Under the pieces are notes generated by a model. That model did not search any database. It was not told the DNA's origin and saw nothing but the letters and a program-made list of their open reading frames with translations. Below are positions 9,674 through 20,200 of a stretch of DNA of 64,000 bases, piece by piece. Made by a program: the position numbers and the translations under genes. Each line of letters begins with the position of its first letter. Within the stretch, counting starts at the first letter, position 1. This stretch comes from Pocillopora damicornis (Eukaryota). Location: positions 372,001 through 436,000 of the forward strand of contig NW_020845389.1 of NCBI RefSeq assembly GCF_003704095.1, read 5' to 3'.

Positions 9674-9815
9674 TTTGAAATAACTGTTTCTTTTGCCCTT
9701 TGCGCTCCGAGGAAAAAAATTATCTATCTCCTCAGTTATCGCCCAGTTTCATAACTATATATGGGGTAATAATAATTGCTCAGATGAATGTTTGTACCGT
9801 TGGAAAGCAAAACTC

Positions 9816-9868
9816 TTCCGGGAAAACTAGTACCATTTGTAGCATGACGTCACCTTCGTGATGATTGG
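9816..9868. promoter_or_regulatory. putative lifeguard proximal promoter motifs: STAT GAS site, CRE and CCAAT box
   Basis: TTCCGGGAA at 9816-9824, TGACGTCA at 9845-9852 and ATTGG at 9864-9868, all 140-200 bp upstream of ATG 9673. Confidence 0.4.
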
Positions 9869-10359
9869 ACAGTGTTGATAAGCAGGGCTGATGGGAAAGT
9901 TAGTTCCAGTCGAGTGACTGAGTATCCAAAGTACTCATGACTTATTCATCAATACACAAGACACGTCTGTGCTATGATTGGCTTTGCTCAAATAATTTCG
10001 TGGTGCGCCTCAATTCACGTGAGGAAACCCGACCGCAGTTAGCTGGTGGATTTCTCTAGGAAGACTGGAATCTTAACTAAGTAACATTTATTAGCACTAT
10101 ATGCCTCATTCAGTGTAATTCCTACCTAGAACAATAGAATAATTTTTCTAAGGACCTAAGGCTAATCTTGTCAAACAGAAGGCATCATGAAACCAACCTC
10201 ATTGCTAGGTCAGCTAGAAATACAACACTGTTAATATTCCTATTGCTACAGTCAAAGAAGTTTGACAGTACTTTTTATTAATTCGCAGTGTATTTAAATG
10301 TTTGAACAATTTTTGGTAACTCTCTGAGAGGAGCTCTACTTCTCAGCGAATTTCTATTC

Positions 10360-13300
10360 CTAAAAGTAATCGATATGGTAACGGCCAGGGTTAATTTTCA
10401 ACAGATTAGCGAGACTCTCCTTGCCAACATCGGTGATCTGATTAGAGCTCAAATCCACTGTAGTTACCTTACATGTTTCCGTCTGTAAGGCTTGACATAG
10501 AGTGTCAACACCGACATCAGTGATCTGATTAAGACTAAGATCCAGTGTCTTCACCTTACAAACAGCTTTTTGTAAAGCTTGACACAGACTGACAACTCCG
10601 GCATCAGTGATCTGATTGAAACTCAAATTGAGTGTGGTTATGCCACATGTTTCTGTCTGTAATGCGTGACACAGACTGACAACACCAGCATCTGTGATCT
10701 GATTACCACTTAGAACCAGTTTTGGTAATTTACTTGTTGCGGTCTGCAGTACCTGACATAGACTAGAAACACCGTCATCAGTGATCTGATTACCACTCAG
10801 ATCCAGCGAAATTGCTCTGCATGTTGCTTTCTGCTGCTCACAGATTGAATTATTCCTGCCCGACTCTCCTTCTGCATTCAATTTACTCATAATATCCAAA
10901 AGAAAAGATACTGTAGTGCAACCCGTATCAGTCACATTCCTGAAAACAATTGTGCCTTTGCGATCACAGAATTCATGGAAGCGCTTCTTTATGACACTTT
11001 TGGCAAACTCTTTGTCTTCGTACTCCATCAGACAATAAGCTGTTAGAAGCTTCCTCCTGAAAAAGTATTCAGTGCTGAATCCATTAAGTATTTGTTCCAT
11101 AAGTGTGTGGTCTTTCTGCTTTGACAGAATACCGGACATGTATTGTAGTACCACTGATGAAACATTTCCAGGAGGAATCTCTTTCCTCTTTACAAACCAA
11201 CGAGCCGCTAGGTACTCTTGGAGAGTCAGGTGGGTGAAGCAAAAATATTTCGTCGTTTCAGAAAAAGATTTTCTGAAAGGAGGACCGCAATGAAGAAGAC
11301 CACTTGCGCTCAAACTTTCAACTTCCTCTAGACCAAACATTTTCACATCCTCTTTGGCGAATAGAAACTTCTTCTCCAGGAGCAATAGGGCAGCAAGCTC
11401 TGATAGTTTATCCAAAGTTTCCTCGTGAGACAGTCCCTTCTTTTTGTTGTGCTTTCTCACAAACATGTTTACCACTTCATAGTAAAGGTCACTTGTTTTC
11501 ACAGGAAGGGTATCACTGCTCGTTGATTCCGTTAGAATGTACTCAAAGTAGGAACACATCAGGAAACAAAGCACAGGAATGTGGGCAAAGCTGACAAGAT
11601 TGGCGTTCTTTGTCATGTGGTCCAGTACTGTGTTTTTCAATCGCTCGTTTCCCCTGAAATACTTCTCAATATATTCCTTCACCTGCGGTTCAAAAAATCC
11701 TGTAATTTCAACGTATCGATCAAAGTCAATTTCATCTTTTATTTTGTCAGATTCCTCGGGTCTTGACGTTACCATGACAACAGAACCTCTCAAGATTCTT
11801 CCTTTGATGAGTTTGGCACACAGTGCGGCTACTGGCATCTTCTCTCGGGCGTTGTTTGGAAATTCCTCATCCAAATCGCTAGCGATGAAATCTTGCTTTG
11901 AATACTCGTCATACCCGTCGATGACGATCAAAACTTCTGCCGGATGACCAACCATGTACTCAAACAAAGAATCGTCAATATTTGAGTGGTCATCTAACAC
12001 TGACGATCGGTTCAGGACTCCTCTCAAGTTGACAGGAGTGTCTTTAAGTAAATCCAGCTGACGAAAGGTCAGTAAGTATGCGAACTTTAAGTCGGGAATG
12101 TTTGTTCCCGAGGGAAACTGAAATAATTTGCCGTCGGCCCAATCTCGTATCAACTTCTGACAAAAGAGAGTTTTACCGATGCCTGCCTTTCCAGTGAGGA
12201 GAATGGATTGAGGATTCTTCTCATTGCCATCGGTTGAAGTGAATATTTCTTGGCAATGCTTGACTGGTTTTCCTCTTATTTGACCGTATTGGCGAAGATG
12301 CTTCTTTCTTTCCATGTTATGGTCTTCAACGGGTTTTCTTCCATGTTGAATGAGAATATTTGTGAAAATGTCATCTGTTTTCACATTTTTCTTGGTTTGA
12401 GAAGCGAGACGGCAGAACTCAGTTTGGCTTATTATTGATTCCTTCAATGCGTTCGTATATGCCGTTACAGCTGAAAAGAGAATCCAGAGCCTGTCTTAAC
12501 TTTGATTAACAAATTATTTTAGTACATTAAATGGCTTTTACCTTAAAGTGACGGTGTTAACATTTGTATTCCGACCGTCCAGGTGAGAGTAGTCCATCCA
12601 AGTTACTTGACCCTGGTGATAACTTCCGTTAAGATTGTGAAGACGTCACTCATTGCTTCTGACAACAATCCCTACCAAGACTACTCTCACCGGGACGATC
12701 AGATTACACCTTCTTAAGTATTAATTGGAGTAGTATTGGATATTAGATATTGAATCATTTGTTCACTCTTCTCTTTTACGTGAAGAATGGCTTCTCGCAC
12801 ACAGGGTTTAAATTTATCGAAATGTTTACCCAGTCTGAAACTCTTCTGACTCCTGACAAAGTAGAGGAAGCCCAAAATTTGAGGCCATGTATCTCTTTGA
12901 TTTGTGTTGTTACGTTCCCTTAAAAGAAAACGTCGTCAGTTTAGAGGCGACTTGGTTCATCGGCGAAGGCTTCCTTTCATTGACAGGCAGAAGAGAGAAG
13001 AAAAAGTGCCCCACCTCCTGTAACCTTTTGCAAAGGTTTGAATTTGACAAGTGTTTTTGGAACAAAGAAACATCCAGGCCATGTAGTTGATGGAAATTTG
13101 AGTCTATCGATCCTCCCTATGCTCCTTATCTTTACTACAAAAATCATATCTTTTCGCATACCTTCAGCTCCTATTTCCCTTTTGGCATTCGCCATGGCCT
13201 CCTTTAATTCGTCCAACTTCCTATCAAACTCGCCGAACTCTTTCATCATTTTATCCAGTTTTTCAGTCATGCTGGCCTCATCTTTAACCCACTGTTCAAG

Positions 13301-13876
13301 GAGCTCTTTGTAGTGTTCCTCAAAATCACTGTCAATACATTGACTTTTCAAGTCATCGATAGCACCTTGGTAACCTTCCCCTCCAGTTCTCACTAGTGCA
13401 CCCTGGATGTCCTTCCAGTACTGATTGAACGTTGCGTCGTCAATCGAGGCCTCGCTAGCATGACTATGAACGGTGTTTCTATAGCACTTGATGCGAACGA
13501 TATCTGCCTCGAGGGATGTGTCATCTGGTGGAGGAAGTGTATCCCAGCCAGTAGCCGGAGGATTAAGACCACAAAGATTCCGCAGCAGAACCATCAGGGT
13601 ACTGATATCAAAATGCTGTGATGAAACTGAAGATTTGACGGCGGGATACAGTTTTTGCCATTGCAAACAACTAAGGACTTTCTTCTTTCGAAGTATTTGC
13701 AGAACGGAATGCACTGAAGGACTTGACAAAACTGTGTCCAAATTTCCTGGTGGACGCTTCTCGTCGAATATCTTTCTTAAGACATGTGATCCGACATCCA
13801 CCAGAAGCCTGCACAGCCGAGCATAATTAGTTGTCTCTTTCGAGGAATGAAACGACTGTTCCATTGCAGAGGCCAT
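10360..13876 (-). CDS. NLR-family protein: DZIP3-like HEPN domain, coiled coil, NACHT and 5 LRRs; 2 coding exons, 941 aa
   Basis: Exons 13876-13162 (donor G|gtatgc) and 12470-10360 (acceptor ttttcag) join in frame over 2826 nt. HEPN: NYARLCRLLVDVG, FDISTLMVLLRN, PPATGWD, RIKCYRNTVHSH. NACHT: Walker A GKAGIGKT, Walker B IVIDGYDE, VTSRP, FTHLTLQEYLAA. LRR: LSxNQITDxGV. Confidence 0.92.
10400..10810 (-). repeat. 87-bp coding tandem repeat (five 29-aa RI-like LRRs)
   Basis: GTGATCTGATT recurs at 10433, 10520, 10607, 10694 and 10781, an exact 87-bp period. Confidence 0.92.
12578..12712 (+). mobile_element. degenerate Penelope-like terminal-repeat fragment in the NLR intron
   Basis: ccctggtgataacttccgttaagattgtgaagacgtc resembles a decayed CTGAnGA...GAAACGTC hammerhead. 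It is flanked by the inverted ggtgagagtagtc/gactactctcacc. Confidence 0.4.
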
Positions 13877-16800
13877 CAAATAAGACTGGTTTCTAATATA
13901 AATAGAGAAGAGATTTAAAAAACAGTACTTACATTGCCTCCCACTTCATATCGCATGAGAAAGGTTTCACCTTTTTGAAGGTCAAGAGCAAACTACGCTA
14001 CATTTCGAGTTCGCTACATGTACGCTACATTGAACATCGAGTTCGCTACTCGCGTGACACACGTACCACAATCTCTCCGGGAACAACATGAATAACGGCC
14101 CTCACTGAATAATGTCTCATAATTTTATCTATGAACTAAATCTATACCTGGAATAAGAGTAAGTGGAGCGAGCGAAAGTGAAGCGAACTTGAACGTAGAG
14201 AACTCAGCGAACTGTAACCGGCGTAAATTATTTTGATTTGTTCTTACTTAAGAGGACAGACACATAGATGGCGTCACCATTAGCAAATGCTTGCTTTTAT
14301 ATCGCATAATTTAAAACAAACAGATTTTATGTTGTTGTGGGTCGTACAGTAATACACCTTAGAAAAAAATTAAAAATTACTTCAGTGCAAACTCTATCCC
14401 TAAGAATAGTTTGTATCCTTGTTTGATTACTAGTCAGCAGTTAGTTATACCAGCCGTGCAAACTTTGAAAGAGTGCTATCAGTTTGTTTTGGGTCAGAGC
14501 GGGTGTGTTTGAACCATGTCAAAATAATTTATTATGAGACTCAGTTTGACTCAGTGCACATCAGTAGCAGCACGACGACCGAACAAAAAATTATTTCAGC
14601 TCATTGTGTAAAAATCCTTATAAAAATGTTTTCTTTCGTTTTCTTCATCACATCTTCTAGCGTTACTTAAGTAATCGAAAACATAATCTGATAGAACTCA
14701 TATGTTAACCGATGGAAATTTGAGATGATTCGGACTGTTTTCAACTAAGAACCAAATATTGCAACTGTTTTCAATGTCATAGAAAGAAAAACAAATTAAA
14801 GCATAAATCACATCAGACAAGTCTTCACGTTTGTGTCCACAGGTTTACAACGACAAATTGGTCCAAAATATTTTAGGACTATACTGTCGCGAAAGACTGT
14901 ATTCAAGTCGTAACTCTGGTTATTTTCTTCTCCGAAAGCAAAAATTAGGAGGCAGACTCACAATTAATTAATACTACACAGTTACAAGAGGAAAATTCAT
15001 CGAAGCCTTTTTAGGAAGATTTAGGAGTAAAAGGTAACGCTATAAATGTATGGGCCACGAATCCTACCTCAAAGCTGCCTCTCAACGAAAAATGCTCGTC
15101 TGCGCGACAGGGAAAGATCGATGGTCTCAGTAGCGTGTAAACACTGGCTAATATTCCTCAGTTGTGATCTGTTTCATTGATCTCAGAAAACACTCTGACA
15201 ACCAATTCGATAACAGTTGATTTTTAAAATTTGGTCATCTCTCCCTGAAGTAAACTAATAAGCTTAAGTAGGCAGAGTTCATAACCAAATAAAACAAAGT
15301 CGGTATGAATTATTTATTCCGCTTTCGAAAGCTCAACCCTTTTCGCTCTATAAATAGCCTCTGTCATCATCATTTGAATATTCATATACCTCATCGTTAG
15401 CAGAATAGAAAATGCATCAAACTGGTTTTCTATATTTCGAGTGCAACATTGAACCGATCTAATCTTAGGTCAAAGTAGCCCTTCTCAGAATTTTTAAACT
15501 ATAGAAGTGATGTAAAATAAAAAAAGAATACGTGTATCTATGCTTGACTAGATATGCATCTTCTGGCATTGATCGACCTGAAAATTGATCTATTACCTTT
15601 CACTTGCATGGTCCGTTCTTGGATCACGAAATCTGGCCTGGATTTACTAAGACGGACCCTTTTACTAGAGGAAAGAAAATCGGGTTGTTAGGCAAAGTTA
15701 CGTAGGGTAGAAATATCTATCGCTGCCTTGATACAGTTAGGGGTTTTCCAATTTGTTTACATGCTGTTGCATTTTCTAATATCACTTTCGAAAACCCTAA
15801 ACTCCCTCAGGCTCCGCAAACTGATGCTAAATGGGTGACTGAATCAACATAAAAATATATGGACACACATGGACACGTGGTTATGCCAGTTTAATTTCTT
15901 CGCCAAGATATAAACGCTCTAAGTTACACTTCACTTTTGCATCTCAATAACAGAATGTGACTTCCGATTCGTTCACAGCTTAATTCTAGAAATTTCTCTG
16001 CCGTGGCCTGAAACAGAAAATCACCAATACAAACATATTTTGATGTCAAATGACGTAAACAGAATTATAAAGGCGTAGCATTTCCGTTTCGAAACCCTTA
16101 CGTTCGCCCCTTCCTTTAAAAACGGTCCACGTCACTAAATGACCCACACATCAGGTAATTACCCATCTGACTCAAGATAAAAAAAAATCGCTGATTTACA
16201 ATGATGAACAACAAAAAGAATCAGTCCTTCCGTTGTTGAAGATTTTGTCAATTTCTATACCCTAAATTTTAGTGCTACATTATCATTGGGCAGAATGCTT
16301 ATCGTTCTCGCGACATCTACTTGAAGTGGCGAAAATATTATAGATCTGTAATATTTGCGGCGTAGCGTAACCAGGAAGGCTCTCGTTGGTCGAGGATTGC
16401 GCGCGCTTTCCTCTGAGGGGAATACTGCCTTAGCTCATTAACTCGTCAAGGTGGAACTAAGAAACGAAGGCCTCTAACTTATTGTTCTGATATCACACTC
16501 AGCGCGCGCATACTTGAACCTGGCTATTCCATGCGTTGGATCTGTAATGGCCATATGCGTTCGATTTTTACTGTAGAAAATTAGTTGTTTATATCTCGCT
16601 AAAACTTAATCAACACACATTTCGCTTCATATCAAGTCCACGACAGTTTGATAAACAGCGGGTTTTTTCTATTATTTTCCGCCTAGGATGCGATTGTCAG
16701 TCATCGAAAAATTACTTTTATCGTAAATGAAGGACAAAGTTTCCGAATCGCTCTAACGTAAGTGTTTTTGAATCGAAAAGGGAAAAAGCTAACAAAGCAG

Positions 16801-17228: not shown

Positions 17229-20200
17229 CTACGGATCGTCACCAAAATGTTGTTGCACATGATCCTCGAAATTTCTCTGACCATAACTTTCAGGAAAAAA
17301 CTTTTCACACATTGGACATATTTTGCCGACTACAGGAGTTGCACCAATGAAATCCTCCTCATCGATAATTTCAATATCACTCTCTCCAGTCCCCGTGTTC
17401 TCGGCCAAAAATGTTCCCATGGGAACTGCCCTTCCTTCGGCTCCATCCGAAGAAGCCCTCGAGATCGGAGATAAATATTTTTCTTTACTCAACCTTCGAC
17501 CAAAGCCAGTAGCTCCAATTTCATCTTGATCATTAAGTCGGTGGTATTCTGATGCTTCTTGTACGGCTTGAACGGGAACGCTTAGAGGGGCATCTTCAGC
17601 GACTAACCGTTCGAAATTTCCCACTTGTTCGAATCGATGCCTTTCGGTAAATGTCATCTCTCCCTCCTGTGGCCATCTAGTGCGGGTTTCTGTTGAATAT
17701 TCCGAAGATTCAGCTCCAGCTGGCCTGGCTTGCGAAGTTTTGATTAATTTCATGAAATCTTCAGTTGTTTTTTCAGTAAGCTCTGCCAGTTTTTGCAAGC
17801 TATTATTTTGTGAATTCAAGTGTTCTCGAACTTTTTTCATTTCCAGTACATGTTCTTGGGCTGTAGACAACATGGTCTCTACTCTCTTCTGAAGTACAGC
17901 ATCTGTTTTTGTTGGCAAGGCTGTTCTTTTTGTAGAGGCTTCTTCTGGTTTTGAAGCTTGTGGACATAAAGGAAAATAAACAAACTTTAGACAAAGAATA
18001 TATCGTAAATATCGCTCCCTTGCTTTGCCCTATTAAATTGAATAAATGTAAACTTATTTTATCAGAAAAGTCTGAGTGAAAGAGAGACTGGATGAAGTCA
18101 AAGTCTAGCAAAGCTGCCGACTAAGTCGACTAGAACCACAATTCGAAATGCTGAGGTGAGACCCTGAACAAACACAAAACCAAAAATGAATCCGGAGAAA
18201 CCCCATCAGATTCTTTCAATGATGGCTAGAGTCGGAGTTGAACCAGATTACACGAGTCGAGTAAGAGGAGACAATGATAGTCCGCCATTTTGAAAACCGT
18301 GAGGGGCTTGGGAGAAGGTTTACGGACTTGCAAAACATCGTAGCAAGGCGCTTACGGTCCACAGCAGGCGCAGAAACGCCAAACAAACAAATCTGAACAC
18401 TTGATTGCCACAGAAAGCGCTTTACCACGATCTCTCGTTTTATTCTTCCTATTTTCTTAGATAAGTTTCTGATATAAATACAAACGTAACAACTCTACCT
18501 TCAGTCACTCCGCCGGCTTCTGCTTCCTTCCTCTGTTCCTTGGTTCGTAATTCTTTATTTTGAACCATTACCTCCTTAAATATCTTGTAAAACCGATTCA
18601 GTTCCTGTGCCTGATCTTCAATTTTATGTTTCAATAATATAGCCTCCGCTTCAGCATTTTTCCGTCCTCCATCTGACAGTTCACATCCCCCTGTACGAGA
18701 TACCACTGCTCCTGTTTTGTTCGCGTTATTTCCTCTAGTTCTTCCCTGTATTGTAACAGTTATATATCCTTCCGACTTTTCCTCAATCCACTTTTTGAGA
18801 TTATCCCTATCCACTATGATAATCCATAGCCGGTTATTTTCTTCCTTAACTTCTAAACCCATGGTTTTCAACTCCTCGCCTAAATCTGTATATTTTTTTC
18901 CTTCTTGCTTTTCTTCCTTTCCGGAGGTCGACTCAGACGAAGCACCACCTTTGGCCTAAACAATTGAGTTAATAAAATAAATAAAACCAATGACGAACAG
19001 ACAAGGAGAAAATAAAATATTTTCAATAGAATATCTAGTTCTGCATCGATAGCGAACTAAAACACTTACTTACTTATCGATTACTTTGTCTACAGAGTGA
19101 ATGAGTAAATAACTAGCCAATGTGAAAAATTTTTAGAAGAAGTTTTGAGAAAAATTATGAAAGGTTTTTAAATTGATTTGTCTTCTTATCCGTGGAAACT
19201 AAAATTACAATGCAAGGCTGAGTCTGACAGACCTTCCGACAGACATGCCATCAAAAACTAATGACAGACATGCCATCAGACAGACCTTCTGGCAGAAATG
19301 ATTTCAGACAGACCTCCAGGCAGAGAAACATGAAATTAGACAACCAGATACTCAAGTAGTTACAGAGTGTCAGACAATGTTCAACATACAGAAAATTAGG
19401 CAGACTAAGAGTGACACACAGGTAATCAAAATAGTAACTATGTGATTGGTTATGACTGCCAGAAATGGAACCCTGGCATCAAAATCCAGCAACAAAATCA
19501 AGACAGACAGATGAAGAGAAATTCAAAGAAACAACAGGAACCACACACTCACATAAATTGACTGATGAATGAAAGGATACATGTATAAGTAACCTCTACC
19601 CTCTGTTTCTGAACATAAAGATTGTGATGAAAAAAAAAGGTATTGAAATTACACACCTGCATAGTGTCTCCTTGTGTTTGTTTCTGAGAAAGCTGTAATT
19701 CTTGTATCGTCCTCTTCAATTTTTCATTCTCTCCAAATTTTTCTTCAAAAGCAAGATAGCTGTTATGTAAATGACTCAAGAGAGCATCTCTTTCTTTATA
19801 CACTTGTTCATGAGATCCTTTTCTATCTCTCTGTTTTGATTTTGCTGTTAGCTCAGATACCTTTGCCTCAGCCCCATGTAAACGCTTCTCAACAGTACGA
19901 AATGCTGATGAGGAGATATTTGAGAAAGAAAAATTTTAATCCTTACAAATGTAATAAATTACATTTTGCTGAGGAAACTAAGAGGTTATTAAACAGGGTG
20001 CACTTGTAATGAAGTGAGGTGCATCATTATCATTTGAATTAAAGGAAGCATACATCGATTAAAAACAAAGTTTGAACAGAATGTTAGTGCCACTATCCCA
20101 ATAATAACAATAATTTGATACCCAACTCTGGGAAAACCAACTAACAAAAAGATACAAAGATGAAAAGGATCTCACTGAAAAACTTCCTAAAAACTTATGT

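Follow-up and report, generated by a model that had tools for sequence, protein, structure and literature searches.

Gene structure and transcription

A gene for a candidate immune receptor lies on the minus strand of a 64,000-nucleotide (nt) stretch of the genome of the reef coral Pocillopora damicornis (RefSeq assembly GCF_003704095.1, contig NW_020845389.1, positions 372,001 to 436,000). This stretch, AT-rich animal DNA of about 37% G+C, is referred to below as the window, and positions are counted from its first nucleotide. The gene is transcribed, spliced, and selectively maintained, and it is near certain to encode a 941-amino-acid (aa) invertebrate NOD-like receptor (NLR) composed of a DZIP3-type HEPN domain, a long helix, a NACHT domain, and leucine-rich repeats (LRRs). 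Its coding sequence derives from two long minus-strand open reading frames (ORFs), 12977-13879 and 10360-12447, and its parts are as follows.

15068-15099, minus strand: 3' end of a noncoding 5' exon, placed by the loose ends of RNA contigs, with donor ...CTTTGAG/gtagga after 15068
13162-13892, minus strand: first coding exon, with acceptor tatattag/ at 13893/13894 and ATG at 13876-13874, defined by RNA contigs and by the Stylophora protein described below
12471-13161, minus strand: intron of 691 nt, GT..AG, phase 1, separating the HEPN-helix module from the NACHT-LRR module
10360-12470, minus strand: second coding exon, aa 239-941 and the stop codon (10362-10360), covering the linker, NACHT domain, putative helical/winged-helix region, and LRRs
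9800-10359, minus strand: 3' untranslated region (UTR) of at least 560 nt, with RNA contigs X1, X5, and X8 continuous over 9800-11263

The intact 941-aa frame of the original prediction, which had been made from the sequence alone, was borne out: coding parts of 715 and 2111 nt add up to 2826 nt, or 941 codons plus a stop codon, joined in phase 1 with zero internal stops. The first of these parts (13876-13162) supplies aa 1-238 and the first base of codon 239, and the intron that follows has donor GAAG/gtatgc after 13162 and acceptor ttttcag/CT before 12470. That the two exons are spliced together was also part of the prediction, and exactly the predicted GT..AG junction (12470 to 13162) was found in RNA contigs X1, X5, X8, and X13, which represent four polyA/oligo-dT libraries from four studies. 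The 691 nt skipped by these contigs have the ends CT..AC on the plus strand, equivalent to GT..AG on the strand of the gene. RNA depth over the intron is near zero, and contigs span the whole coding sequence.

At the 5' end, RNA contigs X1 and X8 leave the genome at 13894, and their loose ends match the window once, exactly, at 15070-15099; the 5' exon extends upstream of 15099 (at least 242 nt in one RNA contig). An in-frame TGA five codons before its junction shows this exon to be untranslated and makes the ATG at 13876 the start codon. Coding exons farther upstream were ruled out by the RNA join from 13893/4 to 15068, the in-frame TGA, and the start methionine shared with the Stylophora protein, as was a 38-nt intron at the GTAAGT near 13932. 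Just downstream of the stop codon, at 10288-10290 in the 3' UTR, the RNA contigs have four nucleotides that the assembly lacks, reading TGCA in three runs and TATT in a fourth; the extra bases reflect either an assembly difference or an indel polymorphism.

Among named proteins, the closest is one of 941 aa from Stylophora pistillata (P0009), which is labelled "NACHT, LRR and PYD domains-containing protein 12-like" and carries PF18738, NACHT, and LRR matches. The first coding exon aligns without gaps to its residues 1-238 at 81% identity, with the same start methionine, and the second aligns without gaps to residues 240-941 at 84% identity; residue 239 corresponds to the split codon. The gene model is therefore supported both by this gapless counterpart and by the RNA junctions. 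Sister genes lacking the HEPN domain were suggested by the closest NACHT-LRR matches (P0001-P0008), in which PF18738 is absent, and were rejected, as these matches are single-exon calls on metagenome scaffolds that start just before the NACHT domain. A Tara Pacific metagenome scaffold of 4027 bp (L061), from another individual, holds this two-exon gene too, with a protein about 99% identical; its automatic annotation has called two "genes" there, one of 299 aa for HEPN and one of 676 aa for NACHT-LRR. Split calls of this kind, which arise from prokaryote-style gene calling, make counts of HEPN-NLRs too low.

Domain architecture

The protein carries the following domains and motifs, from its N terminus to its C terminus except where motifs are nested within domains.

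13307-13747, minus strand: DZIP3/hRUL138-like HEPN domain, aa 44-190 (Pfam PF18738; genome scan position C2024:385310-385750)
13460-13480, minus strand: candidate ribonuclease (RNase) motif R133-N134-T-V-H-S-H139 (R-x5-H), RNTVHSH, aa 133-139
13166-13330, minus strand: long single alpha-helix predicted by AlphaFold, aa 183-237, linking HEPN to NACHT and probably a coiled-coil stalk
11653-12204, minus strand: NACHT NTPase domain (Pfam PF05729, E=6.7e-27)
12169-12192, minus strand: Walker A motif GKAGIGKT, intact by motif search
11905-11931, minus strand: Walker B motif LIVIDGYDE, intact by motif search
11758-11778, minus strand: sensor-1 motif VMVTSRP, intact by motif search
10390-10834, minus strand: five ribonuclease-inhibitor-type LRRs (LxLSxNQITDxG, 29-aa period; LRR_6, E=1.6e-27, five stretches)

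The DZIP3-like HEPN domain recognized by the original prediction matches the Pfam profile over its full length (model positions 1-144 of 144), at 201.8 bits (cut-off, 27; E=5.4e-60), and the RNTVHSH motif lies at exactly the position given for it. The NACHT domain with its intact Walker A and B motifs was likewise recovered, by profile and by motif search, as were the LRRs, over which an 87-nt tandem period runs from 10428 to 10834 in the DNA. Downstream of NACHT, two matches fall below the Pfam cut-offs and stand in the right order, NOD2_WH (21.6 bits; cut-off, 23.1) and NLRC4_HD2 (18.9 bits; cut-off, 33.1). The LRRs are presumed to be the sensor or autoinhibitory part of the protein. Taken together, the ORFs, junction, domains, motifs, and splicing are not attributable to chance.

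Predicted fold

Structure was predicted with AlphaFold from paralog alignments. The model of aa 1-238 has a mean predicted local distance difference test score (pLDDT) of 89.2 and a predicted template modelling score (pTM) of 0.76, and that of the domain only (aa 10-185) reaches pLDDT 88.3 and pTM 0.83. The modelled HEPN domain consists of helices only, and after it comes a single helix of 55 residues (aa 183-237; pLDDT of 74-97 in 10-residue blocks). This helix matches many dimeric and tetrameric solved coiled coils in VIA-align (Z about 6.4), which fits the coiled coil of the original prediction. An exhaustive VIA-align search of the domain-only model against 48,161 chains placed several HEPN proteins among its best matches.

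Rank 1, 4rgp_B: Csm6 of S. mutans, Z 8.0, root-mean-square deviation 3.4, 115 residues aligned
Rank 2, 8vz6_B: PbAbiF, Z 7.4, 155 residues aligned
Rank 4, 6tug_A: Csm6 of E. italicus, Z 6.9, 113 residues aligned
Rank 9, 6vrc_A: Cas13, residues 911-1067, Z 6.5, 101 residues aligned
Rank 23, 5yjc_B: Csm6 of S. epidermidis, Z 6.1, 122 residues aligned
Rank 46, 5yep_B: SO_3166-SO_3165 pair, Z 5.7, 97 residues aligned

The 5yep_B chain is taken here to be the HEPN toxin SO_3166. As modelled, the domain is consistent with a HEPN fold, and this likeness is not decisive on its own. DZIP3, Swt1, and AbiD/F have been described as structural neighbours of the Cas13 HEPN domains (PMC12165695).

Conservation of the candidate catalytic motif

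To the extent that residue conservation can speak to function, it favours an enzymatic HEPN domain over a degenerate one, the catalytic-type residues being strongly conserved over about 60 paralogs. Sixty paralogous HEPN exons were cut from the P. damicornis genome and aligned; R133 is retained in 58 of them, N134 in 59, and H139 in all 60, at overall identities to the studied copy that go down to 35%. Two alignments (A1 and A2) gave the same picture, with H139 invariant and R133 and N134 at least 90% conserved. The usual paralog motif is YRNTVYGH (R-x5-H), and one subfamily has R-x4-H. Beyond this genome, every one of the 54 homologues that could be aligned keeps the motif; they come from Stylophora, Oculina, Montipora, and further species of Pocillopora, and from the clam Mercenaria. 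H137, which would give an R-x3-H reading (RNTVH), was rejected as the catalytic histidine: it is replaced by Y in most paralogs and by Q in the Stylophora protein. Since H137 varies and H139 does not, H139 is the relevant histidine.

The ratio of nonsynonymous to synonymous substitution rates (dN/dS) over the HEPN core is 0.11-0.32 in comparisons with the nine closest paralogs in the genome. Of 25 listed RNA-contig variants in the coding exons that were classified here, 15 are synonymous and 10 are nonsynonymous, with none at R133, N134, or H139, and 23 further RNA-contig differences lie outside this set of 25. Such a pattern fits an active site kept by selection, and an RNA-binding site kept by selection would show it too.

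The HEPN_DZIP3 family in the P. damicornis genome

A six-frame scan of the 234,350,878-bp assembly (4393 contigs) yielded at least 90 HEPN_DZIP3 matches, a lower bound, of which about 60 are near full-length. The studied copy is the sole match in its window. Elsewhere, HEPN_DZIP3 exons form dense clusters on both strands (C1045:364-494 kb, C4043:69-103 kb, C612:34-84 kb, C2182:276-320 kb, and C3384:16-46 kb), in which some lie in single ORFs of 950-1670 aa, representing intronless HEPN-STAND genes, and others are exons of 220-300 aa like the one studied here. A few family members have stop codons, and some are fragments.

The same HEPN-helix module was also found N-terminal on other immune-type scaffolds, namely, AIG1 GTPase, TPR, B-box/filamin/NHL, and WD40. 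Recurrence on several scaffolds is the behaviour expected of an effector cassette, and it fits an adaptor equally. In the HEPN-plus-helix exon, with its bounding phase-1 intron, corals may possess a portable effector cassette, which they would have shuffled onto NACHT, AIG1-GTPase, TPR, and TRIM-like scaffolds.

Relation to described HEPN proteins

Both the class to which this gene belongs and the idea that such proteins sense and then cleave RNA have been in print since 2013, so that the gene is a well-validated candidate rather than a discovery. The novelty implied by the original prediction was overstated in this respect, as the class and the analogy to RNase L are already published (PMC3710099) and later surveys count such genes. 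Anantharaman et al. (2013, PMC3710099) described the DZIP3/hRUL138 HEPN family as having a "mostly conserved" motif, fusions with CARD, NACHT, DEATH, and LRR, and expansions specific to the Nematostella and oyster lineages; RNA degradation "by analogy with RNase L" was their proposal for the CXorf38 HEPN family, which is fused to NACHT and DEATH. Emery et al. (2021, PMC8260672) found HEPN_DZIP3 to be the commonest non-LRR partner of NACHT in 9 of 15 cnidarians, P. damicornis among them, and counted 17-83 HEPN_DZIP3-NACHT proteins in each anthozoan genome. HEPN-NACHT proteins have likewise been reported from Porites and Pocillopora (Noel et al. 2023, PMC10236652) and from pearl oyster, with more than 50 proteins and Rx4-6H logos (Takeuchi et al. 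2022, PMC9646362). The TIAMMAt paper recorded HEPN-NLRs in nine invertebrate taxa and called for molecular studies (PMC8662601), and Kaur et al. (2021, PMC8195603) regard HEPN as an RNase effector in the immune expansions of metazoans.

The studied gene is a member of the anthozoan and bivalve DZIP3-like HEPN-NACHT(-LRR) class, from which it shows no substantive difference. It shares the N-terminal PF18738 HEPN domain, the Rx4-6H motif with Asn after Arg, the central NACHT domain, the C-terminal LRRs, the large lineage-specific expansion, and the "NLRP12-like" label attached to the Stylophora counterpart. Its particulars are an R-x5-H spacing, as in most coral copies (pearl oyster has mostly Rx4H), the 55-residue helix, a set of only five LRRs, and a locus that stands alone rather than in a tandem array.

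Likeness to other systems is looser. RNase L and Ire1 offer the same proposed logic, in which a sensor triggers the pairing of two HEPN domains that cut cellular and viral RNA, but their HEPN (KEN) domain is C-terminal, after a kinase or pseudokinase, and they have neither a STAND NTPase nor LRRs. In the coral protein the HEPN domain is N-terminal, and the Pfam matches at E<=0.1 include neither a kinase nor a KEN-type family; the relation is one of analogy and distant superfamily kinship, not of membership. Bacterial STAND antiphage proteins (Avs, bNACHT) share the order of effector enzyme, STAND NTPase, and repeat sensor, as well as activation by oligomerization, and they include HEPN among their effector types, HEPN-STAND fusions having been noted previously (PMC3710099). 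They differ in being prokaryotic, in using other HEPN families, and in having sensors that are mostly TPR-like and not ribonuclease-inhibitor-type LRRs. Structurally, the predicted domain comes closest to the HEPN domains of Csm6/Csx1, AbiF/AbiD, and Cas13, which have the Rx4-6H motif as well; they are, however, activated by cyclic oligoadenylate through CARF, by noncoding RNA, or by CRISPR RNA, and have 6-12% sequence identity to the coral domain. Vertebrate NLRP and NLRC proteins share NACHT and ribonuclease-inhibitor-type LRRs; the NOD2_WH and NLRC4_HD2 matches of the coral protein are weak, and it has no PYD or CARD and begins with a putative enzyme in place of a death-fold adaptor.

Neighbouring features

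Three further features of the window were recorded.

17229-17918, minus strand: end of the upstream gene on the same strand, with an "autophagy receptor zinc finger-C2H2" match of the CALCOCO2/TAX1BP1 type (PF18112, E=2.2e-9)
55713-56804, plus strand: intronless 363-aa ORF for a rhodopsin-family G protein-coupled receptor (7tm_1, E=1e-45)
23041-23325, plus strand: tandem repeat with nested periods of 18, 50, and 154 nt and up to 93% matches, within a 153-aa ORF (22920-23381)

The 153-aa ORF had no credible Pfam match and was probably generated by the repeat. One RNA contig record of 2884 nt (X1 record 7) contains the junction into the first coding exon of the NLR together with about 2.78 kb of further upstream sequence, which, if colinear with the genome (15068-17845), would reach the last exon of the autophagy-receptor-like gene. 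Overlapping UTRs, read-through transcription, or an assembly merge could each produce such a contig.

Proposed mechanism and alternative explanations

A model of receptor function is proposed based on what is established for the families represented in the protein. The LRRs would hold the NACHT switch closed until a cytosolic ligand, or the loss of a guarded host factor, opened it. Nucleotide exchange would then lead to NACHT oligomerization, bringing together the 55-residue helices and the N-terminal HEPN domains, such that R133, N134, and H139 of two protomers could form a composite, metal-independent RNase site like those of RNase L, Ire1, and Csm6. Translation arrest or death of the infected cell would be expected to follow once viral and/or host RNA had been cut. 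In a variant of this model, the helix would make the protein a constitutive dimer, and regulation would be allosteric instead of depending on induced proximity. A ligand-gated, oligomerization-activated RNase is the likeliest mechanism, with a probability of roughly one half. More tentatively, and at somewhat under even odds, the DZIP3-type HEPN domain would be a true oligomerization-gated RNase through which the NLR executes the response itself, as a metazoan counterpart of Avs-type STAND proteins; this wider proposal includes the portable cassette. The anatomy, reading frame, and splicing of the single-protein sense-and-cleave-RNA module that was originally envisaged were confirmed, and its R, N, and H residues are conserved, while the module itself, with its ligand gating, oligomerization, HEPN pairing, RNase activity, and immune role, is something we infer from the families concerned.

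Several considerations weigh against the proposed RNase. Human DZIP3 is an RNA-binding E3 ligase that is not known to be a nuclease. In agreement with the original prediction, which knew of no demonstrated activity for HEPN-fused NLRs, no DZIP3-type HEPN protein and no animal HEPN-NACHT protein is reported to have RNase activity in the literature searched. Conservation of R-N-x4-H is likewise to be expected of a motif that binds RNA without cutting it. At the structural level, Z values of 6-8 fall in the middling range for helical bundles on the tool's own scale, and the modelled resemblance to Csm6 and AbiF is at the level of the whole fold. Foldseek against the Protein Data Bank (PDB) returned nothing at an E-value of <0.5 for either model, and phmmer against PDB sequences returned no relevant match and hence no solved relative by sequence; the evidence for the fold therefore comes from VIA-align.

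Some of these points would be explained if the HEPN domain were not a nuclease. It could act instead as an RNA-binding sensor or help to recognize an RNA ligand, or it could be a homotypic adaptor, similar to a death fold, that recruits other HEPN_DZIP3 proteins, whether stand-alone, TPR-, AIG1-, or TRIM-like. The domain sits N-terminally on many scaffolds, as adaptors do, and its 90 or more genomic copies would supply many potential partners; the lack of any RNase report for the family in the literature searched is also what this explanation would lead one to expect. Others have suggested that HEPN-NLRs are possibly cytoplasmic RNA sensors (PMC8662601) and have termed the domain "RNA-binding" (PMC10236652). 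Near invariance of R, N, and H among paralogs only 35-75% identical is, however, the signature of active HEPN RNases, and inactive lineages, such as the inactive version of Swt1, are marked by a motif that has been lost or only partly kept (PMC3710099). We consider a non-nuclease HEPN domain less likely than the RNase model, to which it is the main competitor.

Less probable still, and in our judgment a long shot, is that the gene senses no pathogen and serves RNA processing or the stress response in a housekeeping or regulatory capacity. It is a singleton in its window, and a protein of equal length in another genus matches its product at 81-84% identity, which indicates an evolutionarily stable gene and not a member of a fast-turnover array, and its transcript was present in every RNA library examined, none of which was picked for immune challenge. 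A NACHT-LRR architecture combined with lineage-specific family expansion is nevertheless typical of innate immunity (PMC8260672), and the autophagy-receptor zinc finger at the end of the upstream neighbour also counts against this explanation. That the gene is a decaying or nonfunctional copy of an expanded family, some of whose members in the genome do have stop codons or are fragmentary, can be practically dismissed given its intact 941-codon frame, canonical splice sites used in RNA, complete set of NTPase and HEPN motifs, excess of synonymous over nonsynonymous changes, and gapless Stylophora counterpart.

Significance

To our knowledge, the functionally characterized animal NLRs all signal via adaptor domains (PYD, CARD, or BIR). 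If a HEPN-headed NLR cuts RNA directly, the enzyme-effector logic of the STAND proteins that defend bacteria would extend to animals, and an animal NLR would be able to act without recruiting caspases or kinases. The gene described here is a convenient test case, being 941 aa long with five LRRs, an RNA-confirmed structure, expression in many samples, and a same-length counterpart in Stylophora. If the proposed mechanism is true, it would account for the expansion of the HEPN_DZIP3 family, which has at least 90 matches in a 234-Mb genome and ranks among the largest expansions of immune genes in reef corals.

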